64,000 nt of DNA from Piromyces finnis finn (Eukaryota > Fungi > Neocallimastigomycota), in the NCBI GenBank assembly GCA_002104945.1, contig MCFH01000006.1, positions 806,001 through 870,000 of the forward strand, given 5' to 3'. Below the pieces are notes generated by a model. That model had not been told where the DNA came from. It was given only the letters and a program-made list of their open reading frames with translations, and searched no databases. Positions 19,274 through 27,447 of this stretch are shown piece after piece (position 1 is the first letter of the stretch; every line of letters begins with the position of its first letter). Position numbers and translations under genes: made by a program.

Positions 19274-22200
19274 TTATATATTTTTTTGGTCATTAAAATT
19301 ATTGAGGTTTTTTAATTGCCCTTCTAATTCATTTTTCTTTTGATTTAAAAGTTCATTTTCTTTTTCAACCTCAATAATTTGTTCATTCAGAACGGCTAAT
19401 GAATTAGAATATAGAGAGCCTTTATCACCTAAAACAATTTTTAATTGTTCAGCCATTTTCAACCTATTCTTTTCTGATTGATTTACTTGTTCTATTAATG
19501 AATTAATTTGGTTCTGTAATGTGATTCTCGATTGATCCATTGATTTCTTTAATTCCTCTTCTTCTTCACTCATCTTTTTAATACGTTGACGAAGAAATTC
19601 GTTTTCTTTTTTGCAATTACCTAATTTCTTTTGTGATGCATCTAATTGATTTCTAATATCAACAATAATCATTTTTCTTGTTAATGACATGACATTTTCT
19701 TCTTCTAATTTTGCAATTTTATTATCTTTTTCAACAATTATTTGTTTTAATTTTATTTGACTTTCTTCAATCTTCTTATCAAACTTTTCTTCAAATTCTT
19801 TTATTTGATATATTTTTTCATTATATTCAACCTGAATATTGTCAAGTTTTGCTTGATATTCTTGAACTAAGTCTTCAAGATAATTATTTCTATCTAAAAG
19901 TTGTTGATTTTGAATTGGTGGAATTGGTTGTGTTGGTGGAGGAGCATTATTTGGTGGAATATTTGCTATAGCAGTATATTGAAGTGGTGGGGTGTTATTA
20001 GCCTTAATAGAAGGTGAATTTACTGACATTATTGGTGAACCAAATGGTATAACTGGTGAACTGTATGGACTTCCAAAAGAATGGTGATTCATTTTTATTT
20101 GATCAACACCACTAGTGTAACTTTTAATGCTTCCAGTATTACTTAGATTTCTAGGACGGCTATGTTCTCTAGGGCCATTATTTCTAATTTCAAAACTCAT
20201 TCTATCAAGAGTTTCTTTTAACTTTTCTAATTCTAATTTATTATTTTCATTCTTAATTTTTTCATTATTAAGTTCCTTTTCATATTGAATTTTCTCTTCC
20301 TCAGCTTGAACAATTCTCATTTGATAACTATCAACCTTTGCTTGACTTTTGGTTTTCAAAATTGAATATTCATTTTGAAGTTGAGAAAATTTGAATTGAT
20401 ATTCTTCTAATTTTGCTTGAATCTTATTGATTTCATTTTCTTTTAATTGTAATCTACTTTCTAATTCTGATACAGTTTGTAATGTAGATGTTAATTCACT
20501 GTTCTTATTCAATAGATTATCGTTAAGAACTTGAACTTCACTTTCCATATTATTCATTTCTTTAGCTAATTTATCTTTTTCTACCTTTATTTGTGTTACA
20601 GCTTCCTTAATAGAATCACCCTTTTCATTGATTCGTTCACTCTTTTCATTTAATTCATCTTTAACAAATCTTAATTTATTTTCATTTTCCATATATGAAA
20701 TCTTTACTTCTTCTAAATTATCTTGAAGTTGTTTTGTATTGTTTTCATATACCATTATTCTATTTTCTAGGATATTACATTTTTCTTCTAATGAAGTAGT
20801 ATGTTCTTTTTCAGATAATATTAATTTATTCATTTTTTCAAATTGCTGTATTATAATAGATAATTTCTCTACAGTCTTTTGATCATTATTAGTATTTTGA
20901 TTTATAGTTTGCTTTAAGTTACATGCCCATTGAACAGCATCATTATTTTCAGTATTATCAATAATTTCATTTAAGTTATCAATTAAATCTTGAAGTGAAG
21001 TATATTCATCTTTAACTTCATTTAATTCATTGATTTGTTGTTCATATGCAGTACTTTGTTCATTCATTTTAGTCATTAATGATTCATAGGCTTCGGATTT
21101 TTCTTTATCAAGTTCTTCTTTAGCTTGAGTGATATTATAAATACTACCCTCAAGTTTCTTAATTTCTTCATCCCTACATTGTAAAATGGTATTCAATTCA
21201 TCAATTGTAGTTTTGGCTGTTGAAATTTCCTTGGAATGAATATCTATCATTTCTTGAATTTTATTGGTTTGCTCATTATTTTTCGATGTGTTTTGACTTA
21301 ATAATTCGTTCAAATCATTGATCTTTGAATTTAATTCAATACATTCAGTTGCTTTTTGAGAAAGCTCTAAATCCTTTTGCTCATAATCTTGCTTCCTTTT
21401 TTCTAATTCCTTATTTAAGCTATTTATTAATTCACTTTGATGAATGCTTTGATCCTTTAATAAATCATTATCTTCATTCAAATCTTCATTCATTAATTTT
21501 TGTTGCTCATATAAATTGGTTTGTTCCGTCACTGATTGATTTAATTTTTTATTTTCTTCTTCTAATTTTTGGATTTTTGTAGCCAACTCCTCTTTAATGA
21601 CCTTTAACTCATTAATAGAATCTTCATTTCCCTTAATTTTATCCTCGTTGGATTGATTTATATCAGATAATTGTTTATTATCATTTGTTAATAAATTAAT
21701 TGAAGAAACCAAGTTTTCATTCTTTTTGGTCATTTCATCAATGATTTCATAAAGTTTCCTATTTTCTATATTTAAGTTTTTGATATCTTCACTAAGATTG
21801 GTAATACTCTCCTTTTGCTTATTAATTTCAACATCCTTATCTCCTAATACATTACATAAATTACTCTTTTCACTACTTAATTCCTTTGATAAGTTGGCTA
21901 TTTTCGATTCATATAATTTACAAGTAGCATCTTGTTTTGATTCCAACTCAAGAATTTGTTCTTCATAATGTTTGCAAGCTTCTTTTAATTTAAATTCATA
22001 ACCAGCAATCTTGATTTCATAATTATCACATATTTCTTTGCATTGCCCTTCCAGAGAAGCAATCTTTTCATCAAATTGTTTGCAAATTTCATGATGTTCT
22101 TCTTGAATTGCAGATATTTGGCGATCATAGTTTTCACAGGTTTTTGTATAATTTTCACTCATATTAATCATTGTAGAGTTATATTCATTACGTGAACTTT

Positions 22201-25200
22201 CATACTTTCCTTCTAATTCTGAAATAGTTTTTTCCATTTCACTTATCTTTTCATCGTATTCATTACATGTGTCATTATGTTCTTTATTCAAAGATTCTAT
22301 TCTATCTTCATATTCATCGCATGTTTCTATATGTTGTTTTTCTAATTCTTCAATTCTCTGATCATATTCTTTACAAGTATGACTTAAGCTTTTGTTCAAA
22401 TTAGCAACCTTATTATTATATTCTTCACGCATATCATTATAGCGTTTCTCTAGATTAGTTATCTTATCATTATAACCTCTACAAATAGAAGCATTAGCTT
22501 CTGACATGCCAGAAATTTGAGTATCATATCTTTCACAAGTCTCATCATATTTTATATTTAATTCCTTAATTTTTGTTAGGTATTCTTCGCATGTATCATT
22601 GTACTTCTTTTCCATTTCTAATATTTTATTATCATAATTTTGAACTGTTTCAGAATGATCTTTTTCCATATCATTTTGAATTTGCTCCAAACTAGAAATT
22701 TTTTTATCATATTCAAGGCAATCCTTTGAATTCTGTTTTTGAAGATCTGAAATCATCTTTTCATATTTTTCACGTGCTTCAGTATAATTATCATCTAATC
22801 CGGCTACCTTATCTTCATAATCTTTACAAGTATCATTATATTTTTTCTCTAACATAATTATCTTATCATCATATTTATGACAAGTTTCATTATGCTCTTT
22901 TTCCATAGCCAAAATTTGATTATCATAATTTTCGCATGTTTCAGAAAAGCGATCACCTATATTTTTAATTTTTTCTTCATATGCATCACATGAATCATTA
23001 TGTTGTTTTTCTAATGAAGATATTTTTTTATCATATTCAATACAAATATCAGAATATTGTCTTTCCATATCTAATATTTTGCTATCATATTTTTCACATG
23101 TATTCTCAAACTTCTTTTGCATATCTAAAATTTTATTATCATAACTTTCACAAGTATCACTATATTTATTTTCTAAATCTGAGATTTTATTATTATAATC
23201 ATCGCATATATTTTGATGTTCCTTTTTCATTACTGATATTTGATTATCATAATTTTCACATGTATCAGAGTATTGTGCACCCATTTCTACAATTCTTTTA
23301 TTATAATCTTCACATGTTTCATTATATTTATTTTCCAAATCTGAAATTTTATTATCATAACTAAGACACTCATTAGAATGTTGTCTTTTCATTTCTGATA
23401 TTTCATTATCATAGTTAAGACATGCATCTGAGTATTGTTTTTCCATTTCAGAAATTTTATTATTATAACTTTCACAAGTATCACTATATTTATTTTCTAA
23501 ATCTGAGATTTTATTATTATAATCATCACATATATTTTGATGTTCCTTTTTCATTACTGATATTTGATTATCATAATTTTCACATGTATCAGAGTATTGT
23601 GCACCCATTTCTACAATTCTTTTATTATAATCTTCACATGTTTCATTATATTTATTTTCCAAATCTGAAATTTTATTATCATAACTAAGACACTCATTAG
23701 AATGTTGTCTTTTCATTTCTGATATTTCATTATCATAGTTAAGACATGCATCTGAATATTGCTTCTCCATTTCTAATATTTTATTATCATAGTTGTGATT
23801 TGTAATAGAACGTTCTTTTTCTATTCCATATATTTTATTATCATAATCAAGACATCTTTCTGAATACTCTTTTTCTAAACCTGATATCTTATTATCGTAA
23901 TTAAGACATGCATCTGAATATTGTTTTTCTAAACTAGAGATTTTATTATCATAATCCAAGCATTTTTCAGAATAATCTTTTTCCATACCTGAAATTTTAT
24001 TATCATAATTAAGACATGCATCTGAATATTGTTTTTCTAAATTAGAGATTTTATTATCATAATCCAAGCATTTTTCAGAATAATCTTTTTCCATACCTGA
24101 AATTTTATTATCATAATTAAGACATGTATCTGAATATTGTTTTTCTAAACTAGTGATTTTATTATCATAATCCAAGCATTTTTCAGAATAATCTTTTTCC
24201 ATACCTGAAATTTTATTATCATAATTAAGACATGCATCTGAATATTGTTTTTCTAAACTAGAGATTTTATTATCATAATTAAGACAAATTGTAGATTGCT
24301 CCTTTTCCATTTCAGATATTTTTTGATTATAATTTGTAACTGTCTCTGAAAATAATTTATCCTTTTCATTAATAATATTTGACATTTCATTCTTTAAATC
24401 TTCCTGTTCTTTAGAATAAATTTCATTATTTTCTCTAATTTGATTTTCATATTCATCTTTTTGTTTAACCAAAGATTCTTGAGTGTTTTTTAAATCATCA
24501 GTAACATCATTCAGTTTTTTTTCTAACTGAATACGATTTTGATTTGCATTTTCAATTGTGATTTTTAACTCTTCAATAGTACCATTTAGTTCATTAATAA
24601 CATTTTCTAATTCGGATTGTCTGGTTATTAATTGATCAATATCACTTTCAAACTGTTCTGTAGATCTTTTATAACTGTCTACAGATGCCGTTAATTCGCT
24701 AATTCTTTTTATATTATATTCACGCTCTTCATCTAATGTATTTTGCAGTTTTTCTTTTTGATTTTCAGTATTTTCTAAATTAAACTTTATTTCATTCAGA
24801 GAAATAATTAATTCATTATTAACATGGGTTAAGCTTTCATATTGATTTTCAAGATTTAATTTTTCATTTGTTAATGCTTGATGTTTTAAATTAATGACAT
24901 TTAAAGATTCCATTTTTTCTGATAAATCTGACAAAAGTTGGGTTTTTTCATTATTAAATATTTCTCTTTGTTGATTAATTTCATTTAGATGATTTTCATT
25001 AAGCGTTTCAATATTTGCCTCGCTTGTTTTGATATAGGTTTGATATTCTAAAGACATACTATTAATATCTTCCTTAATTTGATCAAATTTTATTAATAAT
25101 TCATCATTTTCTTTGTTTGATAATTGTAATTTTCTATTACTCTCCTTTAACCTTTCTTGTGTGGTAATATAACTAACTTTTATACTACGAATAATATCAA

Positions 25201-27447
25201 AAAGTTGCTTAAGATCAGTAATAGTATTATTTCCAATCTCAGATGAATCGTCTTTCTTTTTTTGTTTTTTTATTACAGAAGTTTTTTTATTATCACCAAT
25301 AGTTGACTTTTTAAAACCACTTGTCGGTAATCTAGATTTTGTTCCTAAAGGTGATGGTAATGGGGATGGTATACGTGAAATATTTAAACTTCTTTCTGAA
25401 GTATTTATACTTAATTCAGAAGGTGGTGATGATTGTGAAGAATTAGAAGCTGGTGTTGATCTACCGTCATCTATTTCAACAGATTTTAAATAATTTAACA
25501 TATCCGTTACATTATTTGAAATTTGACTTATTAATGTTGCTTTTTCTTTAAGGGTTTTTTCAAAAACTTTATTCATATTTTGAACATTATCATAATATTC
25601 TGTTTTAGATATACTCTCTTTAATTTTTAGTTTATTAAAATTTATATAATTATTTAATAATTAATAAAAAAAATGTATACATAAATATAATTTTAAATAT
25701 TATTTTATATATGATAAATAATTTATAATTACTTATCTAATATTACTATATATTAATAAAAAAATTTACCGTTTTTAGCTATGTGTAATTCTTCACTTAA
25801 TTTAGCCATTTGAGTTCTTACACCTTCTTGAGCAGAAATAATAGAAGTATCATTAATATTTTTAAATGTTCTTGCAATAAATCTAATAGTATTTCTTGTT
25901 TCTAAATAATCATTTAAATCTGATGAAATATGAGATATAAGAGAATAACTACCAGTTTGTTGAATACAATCTTGCATCATCTATTCAATATTTAAATTTG
26001 AATTTAATAATTAAAATCTACATAATATATTTTATAATATATTTATTAAATAATTACATGAGTTAACTTTGATTCACGATAGGGTATAAATCCTCTGAAT
26101 TGTTTATCATTAACGTTTTCTAAAACTTTTGATAATGTTAATAAACCAATTGATTGGCCTAATTCTTTATTTCTATCAACACTTCTTTTTGGCTATTTAT
26201 TATAATATTTTAATATTATATTAATTAGAAAAAATTTTTTTTAAAATTAATTTAAAATTCATTCTATTCACTTTTTCTGAACCAGCTAAATGTGCAAAGT
26301 GTATTTTCGATGATACTGAATTTCCTTTGCCATCTTCTTGAACTAAATAAAATGATAGTATAGTATGTGTTCTTGTTGAATTTTCTTCATCAATTATTGA
26401 GTTTCTTGTATCCCAACCATGTATAATACGACTATTAATATATCAGTTTAAATATATGAAAATATAAATAACATACTTATTAATTTACATATTTTAGATC
26501 TAAAATATATTATATTTAATAAAAACTATTATACGTTTTAGATCTTACTCTAATATCATATCTACAGAAATGATTTTCTCTTCTTTTACACCTGTAATAA
26601 CAATTCCTCGCTTTCCTAAATCTCGTACTACTATATTTGAACTCATTTGAGGAGTTCTTAAAGTGTTTGAATTAGGTGAACGAGAACGTAATGATGATTT
26701 TGGTCGATTTTCTGCTAATAAATCTATAAATTCTTCTTGGAATATACATAAAAAAGTCATCTTTAATGAAAATATAGCATTTGGATTCTCTTCTTGTGCA
26801 TCTTTTATGTAATTAAATATATCTGTAATACTTCTCGGTATAATACCTTTTTTTAATAAAATAGAAAAATAATTGTGGTAATATATTAGAATCCCATATA
26901 ATTAAATATTAGAATTGTTTAATCTTATAATTATAATACCAGTATTTTCATTAAAGCCTTTTTCTAATTCTTCTTTGAAGTCTATGCCAATAGAATATTT
27001 CTTACCAGAACCACTCTGTTTATTGTATTTTTATTAAAAACATATTATAAATATTAAAAATTATTTTTTGATTATTAAAGTTTAAATTGCCATTATTGTC
27101 TATCATTAATATATATTTTCTTTCTTTTTTAATTTAAATCTAATTTTATTTTATTTTTAATTTGAATTTGGTATTTTTTTTATCTTTACCTGACCATAGG
27201 TCAAGATAGCTGTATTCATTCCAGATAAAAATCTTTCAATCATTGGTCTGGCACTTTTTGTATATACATCTTCTTGAGTATCATCTTTTGAAAATATATA
27301 ATGATACCCTGAAAGCTTTGAATAATGACCACCGACACCTTTTTCGTCTTTTATCCATAAAAGTCCTTGAGAAGGTAATATCTCAACACATTCTTGTTCA
27401 GTTCTTGATGGTCGTATTCTAACAGTATTTAGTATTAAATTTTTCAT
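19274..27447 (-). CDS. Giant (~2,500 aa) kinesin-like protein: divergent N-terminal motor domain plus a very long coiled-coil tail with an 18-aa Cys-periodic repeat
   Basis: Motor exons 27447-27190, 27015-26940, ~26840-26550, ~26432-26272, ~26182-26058 and 25980-~25770 give VRIRP, YGQ|SGSGKKY, GIIPRSITDIF, NSTRTH, HLAGSE and PYRESKLTH. They splice in frame (G|AG, ESISKTEYY...) into the 6.3-kb exon that contains ORF 19274-25576. Confidence 0.88.
21900..24300 (-). repeat. Coding tandem repeat with a 54-bp/18-aa unit (~44 units) and 108-bp and 324-bp higher-order duplications
   Basis: Unit CLNYDNKISxLEKQYSDA. The word aatccaag recurs at 23953, 24061 and 24169 (108-bp period). The block tttcattatcatagttaagacatgcatctg occurs at 23401 and 23725 (324 bp apart). 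Confidence 0.92.

Follow-up and report, generated by a model that had tools for sequence, protein, structure and literature searches.

Kinesins that bind microtubules without stepping along them are few, and come mostly from animals or yeast (KIF7/Costal2, Vik1). KIF7 and Costal2, of the kinesin-4 family, serve Hedgehog signalling as scaffolds and do not move; the P-loop and switch motifs of KIF7 are canonical, its immotility being due to altered chemomechanical coupling. Among fungal proteins, Vik1 and Cik1 (partners of kinesin-14) and Smy1 of budding yeast are kinesin folds that lack motor catalysis and serve as microtubule-binding or scaffolding partners. In the ATP state Mg2+ has two protein ligands, the second serine of switch I and the threonine of the P-loop. 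In kinesin-1 this threonine, T92, is the only residue that directly contacts Mg2+, and it is hydrogen-bonded to D231 of switch II (Cao et al., PMC5307337). The change T92V disables Mg2+ binding, with loss of ADP and a nucleotide-free head, and T92I and T92N heads bind microtubules with no release even in excess ATP (PMC5307337). KIF7 is a kinesin-4 that binds microtubules without moving (PMC5881503). The gene described here lies in a 64,000 nt stretch of DNA from Piromyces finnis finn (GenBank assembly GCA_002104945.1, contig MCFH01000006.1, positions 806,001 to 870,000 of the forward strand), hereafter the window, and encodes a kinesin-like protein in which the P-loop threonine is replaced by lysine and the switch II aspartate by histidine. 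The gene is expressed and is conserved in the anaerobic gut fungi (Neocallimastigomycota), and its product is, on balance, probably a kinesin-4-derived pseudo-motor that would be unable to hold Mg-nucleotide and would act as a static microtubule tether.

Motor motifs and gene model

An original prediction, made from the sequence, had proposed a pseudo-kinesin at this position, and all of the motor motifs it quoted are present in the spliced minus-strand product. VRIRP occupies residues 9-13 (27423-27409), and the P-loop reads TYGQ/SGSGKKYSIG, where the slash marks intron 1 and Lys92 is encoded by AAA. GIIPR straddles intron 2, and CIFQE stands where EIYNE is expected. Switch I is EENSTRTH (residues 226-233, at 26388-26365), the switch II stretch is KIHFAHLAGSE (KIHFAHLAGSEK) with His258 encoded by CAT, helix 4 is LGQSIGLLTLSKVLENV (LGQSIGLL at 26162-26139), and loop 12, FIPYRESKLTH, is found at 26090-26058. 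Pfam Kinesin (PF00225) matched exons 1, 3, 4 and 5 in colinear order, at the profile positions listed below. When aligned with KIF4 and kinesin-1 chains using HMMER, EENSTRTH sits on N..SSRSH and HLAGSE on DLAGSE. In helix 4, the original prediction had set LGQSIG on the conserved motif, but HMMER places QSIGLL there, two residues away (QSIGLL pairs with KIF4 INRGLL, and SIGLLTL with INRGLLCL); the equivalent of kinesin-1 N255 is then Ser, and the next Ser is Gly, as in kinesin-4. The conserved Asn is lost in either register.

The departures from canonical motifs were followed across the window species and four orthologous taxa (see below). Where the Walker A pattern GxxxxGK[ST] is expected, the window has GQSGSGKK, and GKK occurs in 5/5 taxa, the column being Thr in 23 of 26 canonical kinesins. 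Where switch II should read DxxGxE (DLAGSE), HLAGSE is found in 5/5 taxa, and Asp in all 26 canonical sequences. Switch I, NxxSSRSH in its canonical form and nearly invariant in working kinesins, ends in STRTH in the window and in SIRSH, SKKAH or RTRAH in orthologues, with its Asn replaced by Glu or Lys; as it differs among orthologues, the motif appears to be no longer constrained. In a wider survey, this clade was read at the 52 columns with a conservation of 88% or more in the 26 canonical kinesins: 26/52 are altered in at least one member and 26/52 are unchanged. The unchanged columns include RxRP, G..N...YG, G.GK, the G of GIIPR, DLL, the switch I His, LAGSE, two Leu of helix 4, and SKLT. 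In the P-loop, T92 is Lys in 5/5 taxa and T87 is Ser in 4/5. The other altered columns include EIY, the five remaining switch I positions, D231 (to His), and the GG after helix 5; the junction of loop 11 and helix 4 has lost a conserved Glu and is changed at I-N-x-S. The two independent changes emphasized in the original prediction are thus real and transcribed, but the damage is wider, extending to switch I, EIYNE and the GG motif.

The gene is on the minus strand, with an ATG at 27447 and a stop codon ending at 19274, and has seven exons, six short and one giant. The spliced frame is 7,482 nt (2,493 residues), its only stop being the terminal one, and specifies an N-terminal kinesin motor followed by a neck and by some 2,100 residues of tail with the look of a coiled coil. 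The G+C content of the window is 20.5%. Transcript evidence was obtained from contigs of three public runs (X1-X3, from two studies) aligned to the window. The runs are labelled only 'RNA?', the intron-less form being itself a sign of mRNA or cDNA, and the contigs may derive from the assembled strain, so that they confirm splicing and letters but add no independent evidence on the species. The six introns all have GT..AG ends, and every one is matched by spliced contigs, with joints at 27015/27190, 26838/26932, 26431/26549, 26192/26272, 25980/26058 and 25617/25770; the second of these fits equally well 8 nt along, at 26846/26940. Spliced contigs extend to 27520, giving a 5' untranslated region, and show zero base differences, insertions or deletions relative to the window. 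The junctions and the AAA and CAT codons were among the letters checked in this way, and were identical in all three runs. As both codons are internal to their exons, alternative splicing cannot restore the canonical residues. The exons and the intron that interrupts the P-loop are as follows (all on the minus strand).

Exon 1, 27190..27447: start codon and VRIRP (the RxRP adenine-binding motif) to TAILTYGQ, the first half of the P-loop; Pfam Kinesin positions 41-83.
Intron 1, 27016..27189: GT..AG, cutting the P-loop between Q86 and S87; joint 27015/27190 in X1-X3.
Exon 2, 26940..27015: SGSGKKYSIG, with the Lys92 codon AAA at 27000-26998 where the Walker A Thr/Ser is expected.
Exon 3, 26549..26846: GIIPR, CIFQE as the degenerate form of the EIYNE strand, and about 20 inserted residues rich in Ser, Arg and Pro; Pfam Kinesin positions 102-177.
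Exon 4, 26272..26431: EENSTRTH of switch I and HLAGSE of switch II, in which CAT at 26292-26290 encodes His258; Pfam Kinesin positions 196-237.
Exon 5, 26058..26192: shortened loop 11, helix 4 (LGQSIGLLTLSKVLENV) and loop 12/helix 5 (FIPYRESKLTH); Pfam Kinesin positions 258-286.
Exon 6, 25770..25980: last part of the motor (beta8 and helix 6), the neck-linker region and the first part of the neck helix.
Exon 7, 19274..25617: tail, including the stop codon, an open reading frame with its acceptor (25617) set by the transcripts.

The insertion in exon 3 (RPKSSLRSRSPNSNTLRTPQ, 26640-26700, residues ~161-180) precedes beta5. It is present in four of the taxa and absent in one (L001), and is predicted to be disordered; it could be a phosphoregulatory loop.

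Orthologues, selection and tail

Orthologues were found in four further taxa:

L001 species: metagenome contig L001, and P0031, an independent Logan-derived protein, full length at 1,511 aa; motor 73% identical to that of the window.
Pecoramyces ruminantium: EukProt models P0002 (264 aa) and P0030 (379 aa); P0030 motor 86% identical to that of the window.
L008 taxon: Logan transcript product P0050, 388 aa.
L009/L010 taxon: intron-less motor on JGI contigs of 7,855 and 7,926 nt, with an open reading frame that reaches the end of the 4.3-4.4-kb locus examined; motor 85% identical to that of the window.

P0050 and the L009/L010 product share 75% and 93% identity, respectively, with P0030, and for the five motors the pairwise identities that were computed lie between 68% and 93%. 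The translation of the spliced L001 model is exactly P0031. Exon 1 of the window is 80% identical to that of L001, and an intron lies at the same position of the P-loop in both. GKK and HLAGSE are present in all five taxa, none of which carries the canonical residues, so the conservation of K and H, which the original prediction had proposed to check, is borne out. In the three taxa with DNA sequence, Lys is encoded by AAA, AAG and AAA and His by CAT, CAC and CAT, indicating that the residues have been retained while their codons vary. The window and L001 were compared for the ratio of nonsynonymous to synonymous substitution rates (dN/dS, Nei-Gojobori method), which was 0.20 in the motor, where dS is ~0.8, and 0.27 in the tail. 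The motor is under purifying selection.

A metagenome scan with exon 1 gave no match, while a scan with a three-species alignment gave two metatranscript loci. An exhaustive search with exon 1 found only 3 matches below 1e-10, which marks this exon as highly divergent, and it recovered no annotated full-length protein from the genome of the window itself. A word search with the 2,100-residue tail retrieved one metagenomic relative, the remaining candidates being coiled-coil noise.

Intron 6 differs between the orthologues. In the L008 taxon, the P0050 transcript (L008:1100-1250) runs from HIVKN into GTAAAA, a retained intron 6, which explains the odd C-terminus of this product (GKNIKKKKF). In L001 the intron (25618-25769 in the window) is absent, exon 6 being continuous with the tail exon (5594 onward), and about 20 residues (EGVRTQMAKLSEELHIAKNE) are missing at this site, which suggests that the intron was lost along with a deletion, or that the neck differs.

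The tails of the window and L001 proteins share 59% identity, that of L001 being about 950 residues shorter (1,511 versus 2,493 aa for the full proteins). Within the window tail there is a tandem array of 54 nt (18 residues) at 23018-24286, minus strand, of the form YDNKIS.LEKQYSD.CLN and with higher-order periods of 108, 162 and 324 nt; a wider array spans ~21900-24300. This array is the obvious candidate for the part missing from the L001 tail. No Pfam domain could be aligned to the 2,100-residue tail, and none of the tail modules typical of kinesin-4 (such as KIF21-type, WD40, KIF4 Cys-rich) was detected there: KIF21A_4th scored 18.6 bits, below its cut-off of 33.1, and EspC passed its cut-off only by summed score, with no aligned stretch.

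Fold and family placement

The fold and its ranking against the Protein Data Bank (PDB) were determined with P0030, the orthologue that is 86% identical to the window motor. Its score against PF00225 is 182 bits (cut-off 29.3), where a canonical kinesin-4 reaches 309 bits. AlphaFold2, with a 30-row alignment, gave a predicted local distance difference test score of 83 and a predicted template modelling (TM) score of 0.84, with low confidence only at the insertion (161-179), loop 11 (267-277) and a neck-linker-like segment (353-360), which is followed by a helix (359-378). In a Foldseek search this model matched KIF4 (3zfd) and KIF7 at the top, along with kinesin-1 (probability 1.0, TM 0.7-0.88, 25-29% identity). 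The prediction is thus of a complete kinesin head, carried on a neck of the N type. A phmmer search of the PDB ranked KIF4 first (122.7 bits), then KIF7 (~112), kinesin-5 (109) and KIF22 (96), a small margin, and the GLL signature of kinesin-4 helix 4 is present (SIGLLTL). Broader searches were less specific: a word search with P0031 residues 1-360 retrieved kinesins of many families at 24-31% identity, without a family call, and an ESM Atlas feature search returned 'kinesin' only.

A maximum-likelihood tree of 37 motors (LG+C20+F+G4) separated the clade, P0029, P0022 and P0036 from the 30 others with 98/98 support, the clade being sister to P0029 (99/95). The PDB ranking calls both references of this group kinesin-4, P0022 with KIF4, KIF7 and chain 7x4n ahead by ~45 bits, and P0036 with KIF7 ahead of kinesin-5 by only 5-24 bits. 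The original prediction had proposed to place the motor in a kinesin family tree; the placement given here is tempered by the presence of only two kinesin-4 references, the lack of kinesin-2, -3, -5, -10, -12 and -13, and a very long stem branch of the clade (1.4 changes per site). With these reservations, the motor lineage appears to be derived from kinesin-4, from the neighbourhood of KIF4 and KIF7. An affinity to CENP-E/kinesin-7, suggested by the giant stalk and the GFI.YR-like loop 12, was also considered, and is supported neither by the PDB ranking nor by the tree; forcing the clade with the kinesin-7-like group cost 9.8 log-likelihood units (approximately unbiased (AU) test, p = 0.031).

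The nearest non-orthologous relative found is P0029 (960 aa), from a JGI metatranscriptome (L006:90-2972 and L007:90-2972), with a coding sequence of 34% G+C. It has a similar insertion at the same site before beta5, shares ILSF.L.Q and KGYIPYR with the clade, and is also degenerate. Its damage is complementary, however: GKT and the switch II Asp are kept, while switch I reads ENLSH and switch II DLSCTE. It also differs in having a 100-residue N-terminal extension and a low-complexity tail rather than a giant coiled coil.

Catalysis, microtubule binding and comparison with known kinesins

The clade changes both members of the T92/D231 pair, to Lys and His, together with the second switch I Ser. 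Given the role of T92 in holding Mg2+, its bond to D231 and the effects of its mutation (PMC5307337), impaired catalysis is a sound inference, and loss of catalysis appears to be well supported by it. In the mechanism that we favour, the Walker A Thr that binds Mg2+ has become Lys and the switch II Asp, which hydrogen-bonds this Thr and holds a Mg2+ water, has become His, and the shortened loop 11/helix 4 element is the one that would couple microtubule binding to catalysis; such a head could not hold Mg-nucleotide, nor could it hydrolyse ATP at any useful speed. With no Mg-nucleotide held, it would be expected to stay in an apo-like, strong-binding state, as in the T92 'rigor' mutants, and the protein, presumably dimerised through its stalk, would serve as a static microtubule tether or scaffold and not as a stepping motor.

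Several observations weigh against a static tether. Loop 11 is 4-8 residues shorter than in canonical motors and has lost the E-G-x-x-I-N element. Loop 12 of L001 reads YIPYCESKLTH, the Arg of the FIPYR type that is kept in four taxa being replaced by Cys at what is presumably kinesin-1 R278. The tethering role and the dimerisation are deduced from the architecture of the protein only. Lastly, the invariance of the P-loop backbone (GQ[ST]GSGKK), RxRP and LAGSE reflects more constraint than irrelevant nucleotide binding would predict. The changes in loops 11 and 12 bear on the earlier statement that the microtubule-binding loop is intact, which holds for loop 12 in four taxa but not in L001, nor for loop 11 and the start of helix 4, which are degenerate in all. 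Together with the very long stem branch, they also favour a reading in which microtubule binding has been lost as well, leaving the head as only a folded module for protein interaction or heterodimerisation on a structural coiled-coil protein. We think this quite improbable, as the longest block of the motor to be conserved among the orthologues is that of helix 4, loop 12 and helix 5 (GLLTLSKVLENVN.KQFKGYIPY.ESKLTHM), loop 11 of the window is rich in Lys and Arg, and the dN/dS of the motor is below that of the tail.

The constraint on the P-loop leaves room for another reading, in which the head would be a nucleotide-binding, non-hydrolysing switch, with ATP or ADP bound without Mg2+, the amine of Lys92 in place of the metal, and occupancy tuning the affinity for microtubules or partners without stepping. 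Consistent with this, GQ[ST]GSGKK, RxRP, LAGSE (with its Glu and the Gly that senses the gamma-phosphate) and the switch I His are invariant in all orthologues, and both replacements are basic or metal-compatible, not random, and have remained fixed despite synonymous codon change. Yet T92V alone abolishes ADP binding in kinesin-1 (PMC5307337), and the drift of the switch I Ser/Ser/Arg is hard to square with a working nucleotide sensor, making a switch rather unlikely. A slow or non-hydrolysing nucleotide-gated microtubule clamp on the giant stalk, independent of Mg2+, in which Lys92 would stand for the metal and His258 for the water-holding Asp, is put forward just as tentatively; if true, it would, with the sister P0029, be a sign that the pseudo-kinesins of anaerobic gut fungi form an expanded set. 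That the fold, LAGSE and the backbone of the P-loop are retained, as is a neck-linker-like segment with its helix, could even suggest an active motor with unconventional metal coordination, for example a transition metal bound by His258. This is very unlikely: all three Mg2+-holding positions are changed or unconstrained (T92K, the second switch I Ser as T/I/K/T, and D231H), N255 is Ser, one taxon has Lys for the switch I Arg, and loop 11 is cut short. Least credible, to the point of being negligible, is a pseudogene, assembly error or mis-spliced model, for which the sole initial ground was the unusual residues, and none remains. The spliced transcripts of three runs carry identical letters, the 7,482-nt frame is intact, and the L001 model matches an independent transcript-derived protein exactly. 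The same residues recur across five taxa, with synonymous codons (AAA/AAG and CAT/CAC) and a dN/dS of about 0.2, and the original prediction was therefore right to discount sequencing noise.

The protein would be a well-supported member of the known class of catalytically degenerate kinesins, with an unusual fixed Lys/His pair; the plain annotation 'kinesin motor' would mislead. It is a large cytoskeletal protein specific to the Neocallimastigomycota, a group in which the microtubules of zoospores and rhizoids have been little studied. Searches of the literature on pseudo, dead or degenerate kinesins, or on kinesins of the Neocallimastigomycota, gave no account of this lineage. An orphan fungal 'pseudoKinesin-21' has been mentioned without named members (PMC5076506), and overlap with the present clade is possible.

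Among fungal kinesins without catalysis, Kar3Vik1 appeared in the Foldseek matches, and no sequence relationship of Vik1, Cik1 or Smy1 to the present motor was seen beyond the superfamily. Vik1 differs in that its head is C-terminal and lacks both P-loop and nucleotide pocket, whereas the gut-fungal protein has an intact P-loop backbone and an N-terminal head. The closest functional precedent, by analogy, would be KIF7/Costal2: KIF7 follows close behind KIF4 in sequence and fold, and an N-terminal motor is carried on a long coiled-coil stalk. The differences are that the Mg2+ ligands are replaced in the fungal motor, that identity is only ~28-29%, and that the fungal lineage has no Hedgehog pathway, so no orthology is implied. 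With the kinesin-1 T92V/I/N mutants the likeness is in the altered residue itself, the D231 partner being replaced as well in the fungal motor. Those mutants are single laboratory changes in a canonical motor, whereas the fungal protein has a natural, fixed Lys/His pair along with degeneration of switch I and loop 11. It would thus represent a natural counterpart of the T92 'rigor' mutations, in which both members of the Mg2+ pair have been replaced and kept across the divergence of at least five gut-fungal taxa, and it would offer a ready test of how a kinesin head behaves when the P-loop is kept without Mg-nucleotide binding.

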